Below, piece after piece: positions 1,131-10,200 of a stretch of DNA of 39,359 bases; position 1 is the stretch's first letter; the number at the start of each line of letters is the position of its first letter. The translations under genes and the position numbers were made by a program. Under the pieces are notes generated by a model. The model worked only from the letters and a program-made list of their open reading frames with translations, searched no databases and was not told the origin of the DNA. Origin of the DNA: Octopus bimaculoides (lineage: Eukaryota); contig NC_069002.1 of assembly GCF_001194135.2 (NCBI RefSeq), positions 17,905,935 through 17,945,293 of the forward strand, read 5' to 3'.

Positions 1131-1208
1131 ATGCCAAAAAGCATTCGTATTACGAACAAGCTAGTTCGGTGTTTTCTAGCGGAGTTTCTGGGTACTTTCA
1201 TACTCGTA
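1131..1208 (+). CDS. AQP9-like: Aquaglyceroporin first coding exon, distal copy (1a): [26 protein letters not shown]
   Basis: ATG at 1131 with A at -3, 78 nt, AEFLGT TM1 motif, donor GTAAGT at 1209, phase 0 matching exon 2. Confidence 0.85.
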
Positions 1209-4200
1209 GTAAGTAATTATTTTCTTCTTGTTTTAGCCCCGATTTCTGAAAGTGCAAACTTATGATTAAAAGCGTTCCAGTCCTGACTATTCAACAGTGA
1301 ATCTAAGAGTATAATTATGTTATCCATTAAAACAAACAAAAAAGTGTGATACTGAGGGAATTTGGCTGCTAATTTTAGCCGTTTGAACGACCGCACACAG
1401 GATCGTTTACTTTTTGTGAGCTGGTAACTATTTGCGCGTGTGTGTGAGTGTATGTGCGTGTGTATGTATGTTTGTGAATATGTGTGCTTATGTATATGTG
1501 TGTAAGTGTTTCTTCCAACCAATATCCAATGCCAGGAACATTTTTATAAAAATCAAGTTTAACTTTCTTAAAGTAGGATACACTCCACGGTACAACAGAA
1601 CAAGTTTATCTTTGTTATTTGAATGTAAATCTGCGGATCAGATTTTCGGATCAGGACGCCCTCATAAGTTTCGACGGAGACTTTTCCAATTTATTTCTCG
1701 TTACAGCCTCCGAAATAATAGGGGCTGGGGGCATCTTTATATGAAAAAAAACAATGGAAGATGCCTTTTCGGTAAAAACTATATATTTTCAGACGAAAAC
1801 GTATGTAATTTAAGGAAGATTTGGCTGTTGTTTCTAACATATCCGATGACGACCTTCTTTGTTTCTTCGTCACTCAGATGTATTGATGTTTTTCAATATT
1901 TTTCTACATATGAAAATACTTTTATTAAGCTGTTAAAAAAAACTGAAAATTTGTGATTTTTTCCCACTCCACTCTACATTTTCTGTTTATAATTTTAAAA
2001 TATTGAAGAGCCTGAGAAAGTAATTGTTGAGATTTATCCAGTGATTTAAGAAAGTGGTATGAAAAGATAATTTTAATAGCATACTTTTCTGTTAGTAAAT
2101 ATTTTCCTGCACACACACACACACACACACACACACAACCTCGCTTGGGTTCGAGGTGGAGGGTGAGCTATTAATTTAAATTACAATTTCTTTTGTTGTT
2201 TATATCCCAGCAATGGCCCATCTGTATGCTACTTCTGCATCATCATTCCATAAAATGTGTCTACAGGAAAGAAAATACTGAAAAACATCAATACATGTGA
2301 GAGTGACAAGGAAACGAGTAAGGTCGTCGTGGGATGTGCTAGAAACAACAGCCAAATTCCTATAAATCACATACCTCTGGAAATATTTACCATTTTTTTT
2401 CTTTTCATCAAAAAGGTTTCGGTATTGGTCTCAGAACTGTGAAAAGTTTACAGCTGTTCGTTCGTTAGTTTCCGTAGAAAATTTTAAAATTTACTTTTGG
2501 TTGCATGACGTGTCGAAGGCGACATTTGCTTTGAAGTTGGAAAGTGAAAGAGGAGGAAAGAGAGGGGCGCTTGCGCGCGTGTATGTACGTGTACACACGT
2601 ACGTACACCCATTATCTTTCTGAGACACGGCCATACATGCACGTACGAGCGCCTGTCTCTTTCCTCTTTAACTTTCCAACTTCAAAGCAAATGTTGCCTT
2701 TGATACATCATGAAACCAAAAGTAAAATAAGAAAAATTTTTCAAGGAAACTAACGAACGAAATTGACAGTTCTGAGACCAATATCAAGTGATTGCTAAGG
2801 TTCCCCACCATGGTTTTTAAGTGCATTGTGCCAATAAAACTGGCTGAAATTGGTCCGGAGTGAAGTAGTGAGAGGTGATGGGGTGAACACAAATTTTCCA
2901 AAAATTTTTCATAAAAAGATGCTCCACCCCCACTATCATTTCATGGTGAAAAAAATTGGAAAATCCCTAACAAAACAGAGAAAATCTAACTTATGTGGGT
3001 GTCCTGCTCCACCAGATCTGCTTCTTTTAGTTTCAAATGTCACTAGTGGATATTTCATCCAAATTATATCTCAAATGTTACACACTCTCACTCCCTATCC
3101 TCTATATATCTTAAATACTGTTGCCTGGAAAAAGAAAATAATAATTTTTATGAATGTTTTCAATGTTACTTAATTGATTTTTTCATTTCTTTTTTCTTAT
3201 CAATGGGATTATTTTTTCTTTCCTCAAATACTATAAACTAAAAGACAGAATAATCATTGAGCTATGAATATCTTAAAAAAAAGATGATTTTATTCCTTAA
3301 AAAAAAAATCATCTACGTCGTTCCAGGTTCAGTCCAGTGCATGGCACATTGGGAAAGTGTCATGTACTATAGCCTTGGGCTGACCAAAGCTTTGTGAGTG
3401 GATTTGTTTGATAGAAACTGAAAGAAGTCTGCCGTAAATATATATATACATACACTGGGTGACCAAGTTAGTAGTGGGGGAGGGTGTGCTGAAAGTGTAA
3501 CTGCTAGAATAAGAATAGCCTGGGCAAAGTTCAGAGAGCTCTTACCTCTGCTGGCAACAAAGGGACTCTCACTCAGAGTAAAAGGCAGACTGTATGACGC
3601 ATGTGTACAAACAGCCATGCTACATGGCAGTGAAACATGGGCCGTGACTGCTGAGGACATGCGTAAGCTCGCAAGGAATGAAGCCAGTATGCTCCGATGG
3701 ATGAGTAATGTCAGTGTGCATANNNNNNNNNNNNNNNNNNNNNNNNNNNNNNNNNNNNNNNNNNNNNNNNNNNNNNNNNNNNNNNNNNNNNNNNNNNNNN
3801 NNNNNNNNNNNNNNNNNNNNNNNNNNNNNNNNNNNNNNNNNNNNNNNNNNNNNNNNNNNNNNNNNNNNNNNNNNNNNNNNNNNNNNNNNNNNNNNNNNNN
3901 NNNNNNNNNNNNNNNNNNNNNNNNNNNNNNNNNNNNNNNNNNNNNNNNNNNNNNNNNNNNNNNNNNNNNNNNNNNNNNNNNNNNNNNNNNNNNNNNNNNN
4001 NNNNNNNNNNNNNNNNNNNNNNNNNNNNNNNNNNNNNNNNNNNNNNNNNNNNNNNNNNNNNNNNNNNNNNNNNNNNNNNNNNNNNNNNNNNNNNNNNNNN
4101 NNNNNNNNNNNNNNNNNNNNNNNNNNNNNNNNNNNNNNNNNNNNNNNNNNNNNNNNNNNNNNNNNNNNNNNNNNNNNNNNNNNNAGACCTGTTGAGGCAA

Positions 4201-7200: not shown

Positions 7201-10200
7201 TCGATATGTAAGAAGGGTGTTGATAGAAATTCCATAGAAATCCAACATTTCAGATTCAATCCTTCATCAGGAGGTAGAGAAAAAGAGAAAAAAGTCAAAC
7301 AGAGTTTACATCCTCTCAGCTTAAAAAACAGGCTGCAGCTGAATAATGGATGCAGAATAACACAAACTGCTAATGTGAAACAGAAAGGAGAAGGAAAAGG
7401 ATGATGGAGAGAGTAGAGGTAAGTAAATACTACCTCTACTACTCTTCCTCTCACCCCAAACACATTAAATCTGTCATACCTTTCTCTCAATTTCTTTGCC
7501 TTCAACGACTTTGCAGCATTGGTTTGGATTTTGAATCCCATTACAAAATGATGTGACAGTTTTTTTCTAAATCACTTGTCGACCTGGCAATCCACCGAGC
7601 CCAAGCCATCAACTGTACTGCAGCTCTCCTACCATCTTCACGCACTTCCACCAACTGTATTCCACTCTCTCTCAGCTACTATCCATACATCCTTCCTCCA
7701 GCATGGCCACAGTCACATGACCAAAACAATAAAAAAACTATGCCATTTTAATCCTGAGCAATACCAGGTATCTCTGCTAGTATATATATATTTGTCTCCC
7801 ACTACACCACCACTGCTTGACAACTGGTGTTGGTTTTTTTACATCCCCGTAACTTAGCGGTTTGGGAAAAGATTGATAGAATAAGTACCAGTCTTAAAAA
7901 TAAGTACTGGGATCAATTTATTGGACTAAACACTTCAAGTGGTGCCCCAACATGGCCATAGTCTAATGACTGGAACAAGTAAAAGGTAAACGATATATCT
8001 TCAATATCCCCCTTGAATCTTTTCTCCACCCACTTTGAGAACCACTGAAGGGCTTAATAAAGAACTGATTGTAATTTAGGTGCAAAACCAGTATTTTAGA
8101 GGAACGGGGTTAGATGCTAGCATTTTATTTGATTGACCCCAAAAATATGAGAGGTAAAGTTGACCTTGATGGTACTTGAACACAGAACATAAACGGTTGT
8201 AAAAAATATTGGTTTCAAATTTCAGCACAATGCCAGCAAGTTGGGGGTAGCAGGTAAGTCAATCATAGTTCTCAACTGGTATTTATTTTATGACCAAGAA
8301 AGAATGTAAGAATGAAAGGTGAAGTCAACCATGGTGAAAGTTGAACTCAGAATGTAAAGATAAATGAAACGCCACTGAGCATTTTGCCTGGTGCAGTATC
8401 GATTCTGCCAGCTTGTCACCCTTAGGCTGGAAGAAATATTGCAAGGCCAATCCACTGGCCTTTAAGTTTAATGAACAACACACACACACACACACACACA
8501 CACACTCACTCAGACTCATAGATTCCCATACATCATCATCATCATTGTTTAACATCCGCTTTCCATGCTAGCATGGGTTGGACAATTTGACTGGGGACTG
8601 GTGAAACCAGATGTCTACTCCAGGCTCCAATCTGATCTGGCAGAGTTTCTACAGCTGGATGCCCTTCCTAACGCCAACCACTCCGAGAGTGTAGTGGGTG
8701 CTTTTACGTGTCACCCGCACGAAGGCCAGTCAGGCGGTACTGGCAACGGCCATGCTCAAAATGGTGTATTTTATGTGCCACCTGCACAGGAGCCAGTCCA
8801 GTGGTACTGGCAACGATACATATTTACATATGTTGTGCGTGCATGCGTTTACTGCCCGAAGTTCAAATTTGAGGAGAAAAGTGAGATAATAGGTGGAGAG
8901 ATAAAAGGAGAGGGGGGAGTTAAATAATAAACACAAACAACTGAAACACTAATATGAGTAGTGGGAGGTTGAATTAGAAAGGAAACAGAAGAATATGAAA
9001 AATTTAAAATGGCAAACGAAAGAAGAATGTAAGAGGCCTGAAGAGAAGAATGCTAAAAGATAATAGGTTAAGATCAAAGTACAAGTGTTGACAAGGAGAA
9101 GGAAGGGAGGGAGAGAAAGAGGGATAGAGAAAACGAAGAGAAAGAAAAGGAAAGAGTGTGAGAGAAGGGAGAGAAAGAACAGAGAAGGAAGAGAGAAAGA
9201 GGGGAAAGCAAAACAAGAGAAAGAGTAGGAGTGGGAGAAGAAAAACAAACCAAAGACATTCGAAGTGACATAGATCAGCCCCAAGTTAAGCTTGAATGAA
9301 CAAAATTTAGTGGTGACATAAAACAACGACCAGAATCATTTAAAGTTATTGAAGTTTATTTTGTTTAATTTATATTTATTCCATGCTTGTTCGTTGAAAC
9401 TATGCCGAAATTTAAGCCTATTAGAAACAAACTAGCTAGATGCTTTCTTGCGGAGTTTCTGGGTACTTTCCTACTCTTGGTAAGTAATCAATTAAATTGT
9501 TATTAGATTGTTTCAAACTCCAGATCATCTTTTCCCCTTTATAAGTTTATGCAGGGCTATATTATATTCAATGTAATATGAAGGAGTTTTAACTGCTATT
9601 TCTAACAACTTAAATGATCGCATAGTTTGTTTTTGTAGTTGATGAATGTTTGTTCCCTACCCCCATCCATCACCAACACTCAACAAAAATATTTCAGGTT
9701 CATCTTTTATTCTCGAAAGTAAATCTCTTTCAGTTTCGATTCTCGGTCATTACTCTTTTTTTTTATTTAAACTAACATAGTTAATGTTTTCAGAAAGAGA
9801 AATGCATGAATCATTTTAGTTTCATGATTGATGTTTCAAGGGTTTTTTCTTCTTGGTATTTTTTTCAGTCTGTGATCATAAATTGGAAGTGGAAACATTA
9901 TCATTAACAATTGATATTTTGGAAAGAAAAAAAAAATTGTTAGCATAAAGAAGTCACAAGAACAGGGGTGTTGGTGCCTGAGTGCCTTGTCAACACATTC
10001 CTGGATAGTACTCAAATAGTGTTGAGATATAACCACTTTCAATTTGTGATCACAAACTGAAATAATCCCCTTTTCAGAAAAGATCTACTGATTCTTCTAT
10101 CATCATATTGATGTTATTTTTATGGCTCTTTCTGAATAATATATATACAGAAAAGACATAATAATTGTAGTCATCTGATCCAAAATATTTTCAAAAAATA

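Follow-up and report, generated by a model that had tools for sequence, protein, structure and literature searches.

How does a single channel gene come by two first coding exons, and are both of them used? The question is raised by a stretch of 39,359 nucleotides (nt) from Octopus bimaculoides (contig NC_069002.1, positions 17,905,935 to 17,945,293 of the forward strand), here called the window, to whose first letter all coordinates refer unless another sequence is named. The window carries one aquaglyceroporin gene on the + strand, made up of two first exons, here called 1A and 1B, and exons 2-6 (Table 1). We consider, with a probability of about 0.88, that a tandem duplication gave rise to the two first exons, that transcription starts separately at each and that both serve a single shared body, origin and function being the inferred parts of this reading. 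The RNA runs are known by codes (X1 and so on) and their tissues are unlabelled, so that differences among them are called sample-specific and not tissue-specific.

Two related first exons and one gene body

The coding part of 1A reads ATGCCAAAAAGC...CTCGTA and that of 1B ATGCCGAAATTT...CTCTTG; each opens with ATG, runs for 78 nt and is followed by GTAAGTAAT. The two agree in length, phase and donor, and share 60 of 78 nt and 19 of 26 amino acids (aa), including a block of 21 identical nt, GCGGAGTTTCTGGGTACTTTC. Exon 1 supplies the cytosolic tail at the N-terminus and the first half of the first transmembrane segment (TM1), with the conserved AEFLGT. The tail has diverged (SIRIT in 1A vs FKPIR in 1B), and the differences within TM1 are conservative (V/A, I/L, V/L). 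In a sensitive blastn comparison of 2 kb against 2 kb, the sole strong match pairs 1126-1222 with 9397-9493 (77% over 97 nt, E=1e-17); the likeness ends at the exon edges plus a few bases, and the flanks cannot otherwise be aligned. A tblastn search of 1209-9401 with the full protein found no relic of exons 2-6 (best E=0.39), and a third copy of exon 1 was not found by tblastn across the window.

Both copies are spliced to exon 2, giving proteins that are identical from residue 27 on. For 1B, the joint 9479>17003, with GT..AG ends, is present in RNA contigs of runs X4, X7, X8 and X9, while for 1A, contigs of runs X1, X6 and X8 match the genome as far as 1208 and then change over to TTGGTTGGACTTGCTGGTGTAGCACAGGTT, the opening 30 letters of exon 2. 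Single contigs carry either form through the body: one of 913 nt from run X6 covers 977-1208 and then exons 2-6, and one of 1185 nt from run X4 covers 9233-9479, exons 2-6 and a further 160 nt, both with 0 mismatches on exons 5 and 6. In run X8 the assembly graph forks exactly at 17003, and the depths of the 1A path (7.38) and the 1B path (13.3) add up to approximately that of the body (20.5). The contigs joining 1A and 1B to the body, together with these additive depths, indicate that one gene body receives two first exons. The words that span the junctions contain copy-specific bases no more than 9 nt from the junction, and the two joints are therefore no graph artefact of the shared 21-nt block. 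No joint from 1A to 1B was seen at contig level among the joints and loose ends listed.

Samples differ in the first exon that they use, some having 1A only, some 1B only and some both. By the k-mer index, runs X1, X2, X3 and X6 are listed for 1A and not for 1B, runs X4 and X7 for 1B and not for 1A, and runs X8 and X9 for both; run X8 holds both forms by its contigs as well, and run X9 by the k-mer index alone. The latter run is indexed for the 1A region, yet no X9 contig was placed at 943-1246. A separate observation is that one contig of run X1 passes through the 1A donor to 1246 and then departs from the genome; it could represent unspliced RNA or a minor form.

The first-pass annotation of the window had described two 78-nt, 26-codon exons with a common donor and without exons 2-6 between them, and had proposed that they give two isoforms differing in the N-terminus and in part of TM1. 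The description agrees with the comparison and the tblastn search given above, and the proposal with spliced sequences from both copies (1A to exon 2 in contigs of three runs, 1B to exon 2 in contigs of four) and with the single contigs that join either first exon to exons 2-6.

Transcription starts and promoters

Up to its ATG, each of the two 5' untranslated regions (UTRs) follows the genome without a break, and neither first exon receives a splice from upstream. Shortly upstream of 1B there is a stretch with a contig depth of 0 (8833-9105), and in run X9 the depth jumps from 25.6 to 147.8 at 9321. In run X22, which is stranded, first mates map to the - strand over 1B, as expected for RNA of the + strand. 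The continuity of the 5'UTRs and the zero RNA upstream of 1B indicate two promoters, as the first-pass annotation had suggested; two transcription starts some 8 kb apart are most simply read in this way, and the evidence for it is strongly suggestive. The distal promoter would lie upstream of the 1A contig starts and the proximal one just upstream of the 1B contig starts.

A course of events can be proposed in which a segment with promoter, 5'UTR and first coding exon would have been duplicated in tandem, each copy then being transcribed from its own start and spliced to the one exon 2 by way of a strong donor, GTAAGTAAT, that is the same in both. The choice of promoter would set the isoform, the duplication would have split the expression domains between the two promoters, and the diverged tail (SIRIT or FKPIR) may add regulation specific to one isoform.

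Gene model and protein family

The gene belongs to the MIP channel family: the channel domain with its two Asn-Pro-Ala (NPA) motifs is present, and the orthologue cluster carries PF00230. The best relatives of solved structure in a PDB search are AQP3 (E=3.5e-76), AQP10 (2.6e-70), AQP7 (4e-66) and GlpF (7e-47), and no water-selective aquaporin appeared in that search at E<=1e-20. Orthologues are named aquaporin-3, -7 or -10-like in their source databases. On this sequence evidence the gene is an aquaglyceroporin (AQP3/7/9/10-like) of O. bimaculoides, and it is predicted to conduct glycerol. A protein search with a query of 114 aa returned short, mostly bacterial GlpF-like fragments and no cephalopod sequence; the full-length query found the orthologues.

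Table 1. Features of the aquaglyceroporin locus in window coordinates
Feature	Position	Strand	Remarks
5'UTR of 1A	604-1130	+	contigs of different runs start at 977, 943 and 604; identity to O. sinensis 93-95%
First exon 1A, coding part	1131-1208	+	26 codons; donor GTAAGTAAT; spliced to exon 2 in runs X1, X6, X8
Repeat block within the 1A-1B interval	2957-7167	.	contains both gaps and pieces of LINE reverse transcriptase, RVT_1 at 6499-6789; absent from O. sinensis
5'UTR of 1B	9134-9401	+	contig starts at 9321, 9291, 9233 and 9134
First exon 1B, coding part	9402-9479	+	26 codons; donor GTAAGTAAT; joint 9479>17003 in runs X4, X7, X8, X9
Transposon-filled part of the intron from 1B to exon 2	9605-16596	.	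absent from O. sinensis; colinearity with locus L001 breaks at 16125/16801
Exon 2	17003-17129	+	common acceptor for 1A and 1B; rest of TM1 and loop A
Exon 3	23498-23635	+	first NPA motif (NPAVT)
Exon 4	27198-27316	+	
Exon 5	31946-32163	+	second NPA motif (NPARD); joint 32163>34906 in runs X1, X4, X6, X7
Exon 6	34906-35081	+	RNA spliced after 35081 to a seventh exon outside the window

Exons 2-4 total 384 nt, consistent with the X6 contig, and the exon boundaries are upheld by such arithmetic on the RNA contigs and by the joint 32163>34906. The recorded protein XP_014767631.1, 'aquaporin-3 [Octopus bimaculoides]', of 320 aa, equals 1B plus exons 2-6 plus a read-through, letter for letter. Its C-terminus runs through the donor after 35081 into intron sequence (35081-35400). 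The contigs of runs X1, X4 and X7 are spliced after 35081 and carry 130-160 nt more, and in O. sinensis a seventh exon lies at 29047-29106 (VAATTSSQRLMESNLTDTN*) of the corresponding locus, L001. Colinearity puts the expected exon 7 of O. bimaculoides beyond 39359, some 300 nt outside the window, and a search for it inside the window did not find it. A second N-terminal isoform thus completes the gene model, which in its recorded form also has an incorrect C-terminus.

Conservation and age of the duplication

Both forms recur in other octopuses. In the RefSeq records of O. sinensis, aquaporin-7-like isoform X1 (XP_029649373.1) starts with the 1B-type peptide and isoform X2 (XP_036368211.1) with the 1A-type peptide, and an O. 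vulgaris protein has the 1A-type N-terminus; residues 1-25 of 1A do not differ among O. bimaculoides, O. sinensis and O. vulgaris. The open frame is kept in O. sinensis in both exons (25/26 and 24/26 aa, with 4 of 78 nt differing in each), as are the ATG and the consensus donor, and neither copy is lost or frameshifted in that species. A third O. sinensis record, isoform X3 (P0241, 251 aa), starts at a Met of exon 2, so that TM1 would be missing; its source is presumably yet another first exon, one without coding sequence.

When the paralogues 1A and 1B are compared over all 26 codons, dS (synonymous divergence) is 0.77, dN (nonsynonymous divergence) 0.17 and dN/dS 0.22 (Fisher p=0.01), and over codons 9-26, the TM1 part, the values are 0.635, 0.079 and 0.12 (Fisher p=0.006); the pooled orthologue test for selection gave p=0.02. 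Together, the low dN/dS between the paralogues and the unalignable non-coding DNA around them indicate that the duplication is old and that both copies have been kept as coding sequence. Purifying selection on both copies, which had been claimed from the window itself, thus finds support, on small counts, in the dN/dS of 0.22 and the open frames of O. sinensis. DNA runs of two further organisms, coded C and D (X30 and X31), show 1A nearly unchanged, with one synonymous change at 1178, and are too close to inform on selection. That change, A>T (CTA>CTT, Leu16), is found in DNA contigs of organisms C and D and of run X15, which bears the same species label, and makes 1A match 1B at that base. 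In O. sinensis the two first exons agree completely over their final 27 nt (L001 10052-10078 vs 15974-16000), whereas in O. bimaculoides (1182-1208 vs 9453-9479) they have 3 differences; gene conversion in one lineage, or lineage-specific changes in the other, could have produced this pattern.

As to age, protein P0123 of Argonauta hians and the Octopus protein are reciprocal best hits; P0123 has the same 26-codon first exon and is the probable orthologue. A second first exon was not found in A. hians in the 10 kb upstream or in intron 1, and either the duplication took place within the octopus lineage or a copy was lost in Argonauta. The duplication would predate the split between O. bimaculoides and O. 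sinensis and possibly followed the split from Argonauta.

Continuity of the locus, assembly gaps and repeats

Two N gaps, 3723-4184 and 5072-5213, separate the copies, and as both are intronic the reading frame is unaffected. All four of their flanks recur elsewhere in the window. The left flank of the second gap (4852-5071) matches 6895-7123 and 11412-11627, both adjoining RVT_1 hits, and is a member of the repeat family whose copies at 6499-7123 and 11412-11913 bear reverse transcriptase. The gaps had earlier been placed inside long interspersed nuclear elements (LINEs), a placement that is upheld by the repeated flanks and by the reverse-transcriptase pieces of the block at 2957-7167. The O. 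sinensis locus L001, which has no N, is colinear with the window: 1A lies at 10001-10078, 1B at 15923-16000 and exon 2 at 17292, in the same order and in a contiguous assembly. Window positions 2956 and 7168 are adjacent there (L001 14095-14098), which makes the intervening 4.2 kb of the window, both gaps included, a repeat block specific to one lineage.

Between 1B and exon 2, a transposon-rich block lengthens the intron from 1.3 kb to 7.5 kb; it contains RVT_1 at 11698-11913 (-) and an open reading frame for a piggyBac-like transposase (DDE_Tnp_1_7) at 13920-14294; LINE reverse transcriptase occurs on both strands across the blocks 2957-7167 and 9605-16596. The repeat copies 3328-3676 and 35488-35820 are 85% identical and each abuts an assembly gap (3723 and 35821), and the gaps seem to be tied to this repeat family. 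In O. sinensis, the interval between 1A and 1B holds a 1.8-kb minisatellite (L001 11936-13746) whose unit occurs once in the window, at 2593-2628, and downstream of the gene (L001 ~33300-39100) there is a long 145-nt satellite, with a unit related to window 5222-5295. A unit of 184 nt, present twice in tandem at 37810-38178 (89% identical), has related copies both in other parts of the window and in L001 and resembles a short interspersed repeat. Long CA/TG microsatellites are also present in the gene region.

Alternative readings

An error of assembly would offer another account of the two exons: two paralogous genes would have been misjoined or collapsed over the N gaps, 1A coming from another gene. 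The two gaps between the copies are of estimated length and have repetitive flanks, as such an error would have it, but both first exons join the same exon 2 and exons 5-6 with zero mismatches, the path depths are additive in run X8, on the O. sinensis chromosome, which is free of N, the order is unchanged and no coding sequence separates the copies, and a relic of exons 2-6 was not found between them. The shared body and the gap-free arrangement in O. sinensis contradict, and indeed exclude, a misjoin of two genes, a possibility that the first-pass annotation had itself raised; we reject it and give it practically no weight. Very improbable, too, is the reading that one copy is a pseudo-exon in decay and that its use reflects transcriptional noise. 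The contig depths of 5-20 in several runs are low enough to agree with noise; each copy is nevertheless the sole form detected in some runs (1A in X1 and X6, 1B in X4 and X7), in two species neither has lost its ATG or its open frame and the consensus donors are identical, and dN/dS lies well under 1, with no similarity left in the flanks. This reading is rejected on account of the exclusive use in some runs, the open frames and the constrained dN/dS.

If both copies are functional exons of one gene, it can be asked what the difference between the proteins contributes. To judge by the two peptides, the isoforms may differ in function. Only in 1A do Ser4 (SIR) and Thr8 (TNK, RIT) fit the protein kinase C (PKC)-type motif [ST]-x-[RK] and the motif R-x-T, 1B being without S, T or Y before residue 22, and control through the 1A tail may, by analogy, resemble the N-terminal phosphorylation that governs membrane trafficking of the glycerol-transporting aquaporins (Glps) of copepods. 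Alternatively, regulatory subfunctionalisation could be all that took place, the copies having been kept for their promoters, with neutral amino acid differences and proteins that work alike. The conservative nature of the TM1 differences, the shortness of the tail, the sample-specific use of the first exons and the tolerance of 1B for P2L and L24I between species all agree with this, which we regard as a serious possibility at somewhat less than even odds, whereas the identity of the 1A tail over residues 1-25 in three Octopus species and the effect of N-terminal differences on trafficking in copepod Glps (PMC8167128) speak against it. Between a promoter-only role and trafficking control, the one is about as likely as the other. 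A fuller scenario, in which the octopus lineage converged with copepods through first-exon duplication, 1A gained Ser4 and Thr8, and the isoforms came to be sorted or gated differently by tissue, appears unlikely, if by no means negligible; where 1A has Ser4/Thr8, an (I/V)RN motif is retained in 1B and in several other molluscan Glps. If true, it would represent a convergent route to isoform-specific control of the trafficking of glycerol and water transport.

Several points weigh against the preferred reading of a tandem-duplicated first exon with two starts, one body and two distinct, selected isoforms. The transcription starts were read from the ends of assembled contigs and not from cap-based data. 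Of three deep RNA runs of 2026 (X22-X24) about 6% was read, with the gene barely covered and no junction counts obtained. The tests for selection draw on 26 codons with few substitutions, and O. bimaculoides and O. sinensis are very close (the flanks of 1A are 93-95% identical), so that conservation of the exons between them says little; 1B, moreover, has two amino acid changes between these species, Pro2 to Leu (P2L) and L24I. The phosphorylation motifs are short and common, and their presence is a motif match only.

Comparison with known systems

A close parallel is found in the salmon louse, Lepeophtheirus salmonis, in which Glp1_v1/v2 and Glp3_v1/v2 arise from a proximal or a distal first exon with tissue-specific expression, and in which the Glp isoforms reach the membrane under the control of protein kinase A or PKC through N-terminal sites (PMC4539701, PMC8167128). 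The octopus gene belongs to the same subfamily and likewise combines a distal and a proximal first coding exon with a common body, the proteins differing in the N-terminus only and expression varying between samples. It differs in its independent origin (mollusc vs crustacean) and in that its exons are clear paralogues of equal length which also encode half of TM1. Differences in tissue, sex and trafficking have been demonstrated for the copepod Glps, whereas the octopus gene is known from sequence and coded RNA runs.

Vertebrate AQP4 also exists as two N-terminal forms of one aquaporin, M1 and M23, which arise mainly from alternative translation starts and non-paralogous 5' exons, without exchange of TM1. 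In the clustered protocadherins and in UGT1A, tandem 5' exons with their own promoters are joined to shared downstream exons. Duplicated 5' coding sequences used through alternative promoters are a recognised class, described in a human survey (PMC8373072). The octopus gene resembles this class of tandem exon duplication in having a homologous 5' exon duplicated, probable separate promoters, shared exons and conservation across species, and departs from it in having two copies only and a very short exon of 26 codons.

In the literature searched, the layout is not described for molluscan aquaglyceroporins and no paper deals with the two octopus isoforms. The direct orthologues, isoforms X1 and X2 of O. 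sinensis (body 94% identical), stand in RefSeq as automated annotations without comment, while the O. bimaculoides record XP_014767631.1 has the 1B form only; as O. sinensis RefSeq already lists both isoforms, the novelty implied by the first-pass annotation was overstated. What the window contains is a real but ordinary gene layout with no new mechanism. With it, a mollusc joins the few animals that make aquaglyceroporin diversity by alternative first coding exons and not by gene duplication, and the two octopus forms, which differ by a five-residue tail and three conservative TM1 residues, make up a small and clean natural isoform pair that can be used for questions on the N-terminus and the sorting of channels.

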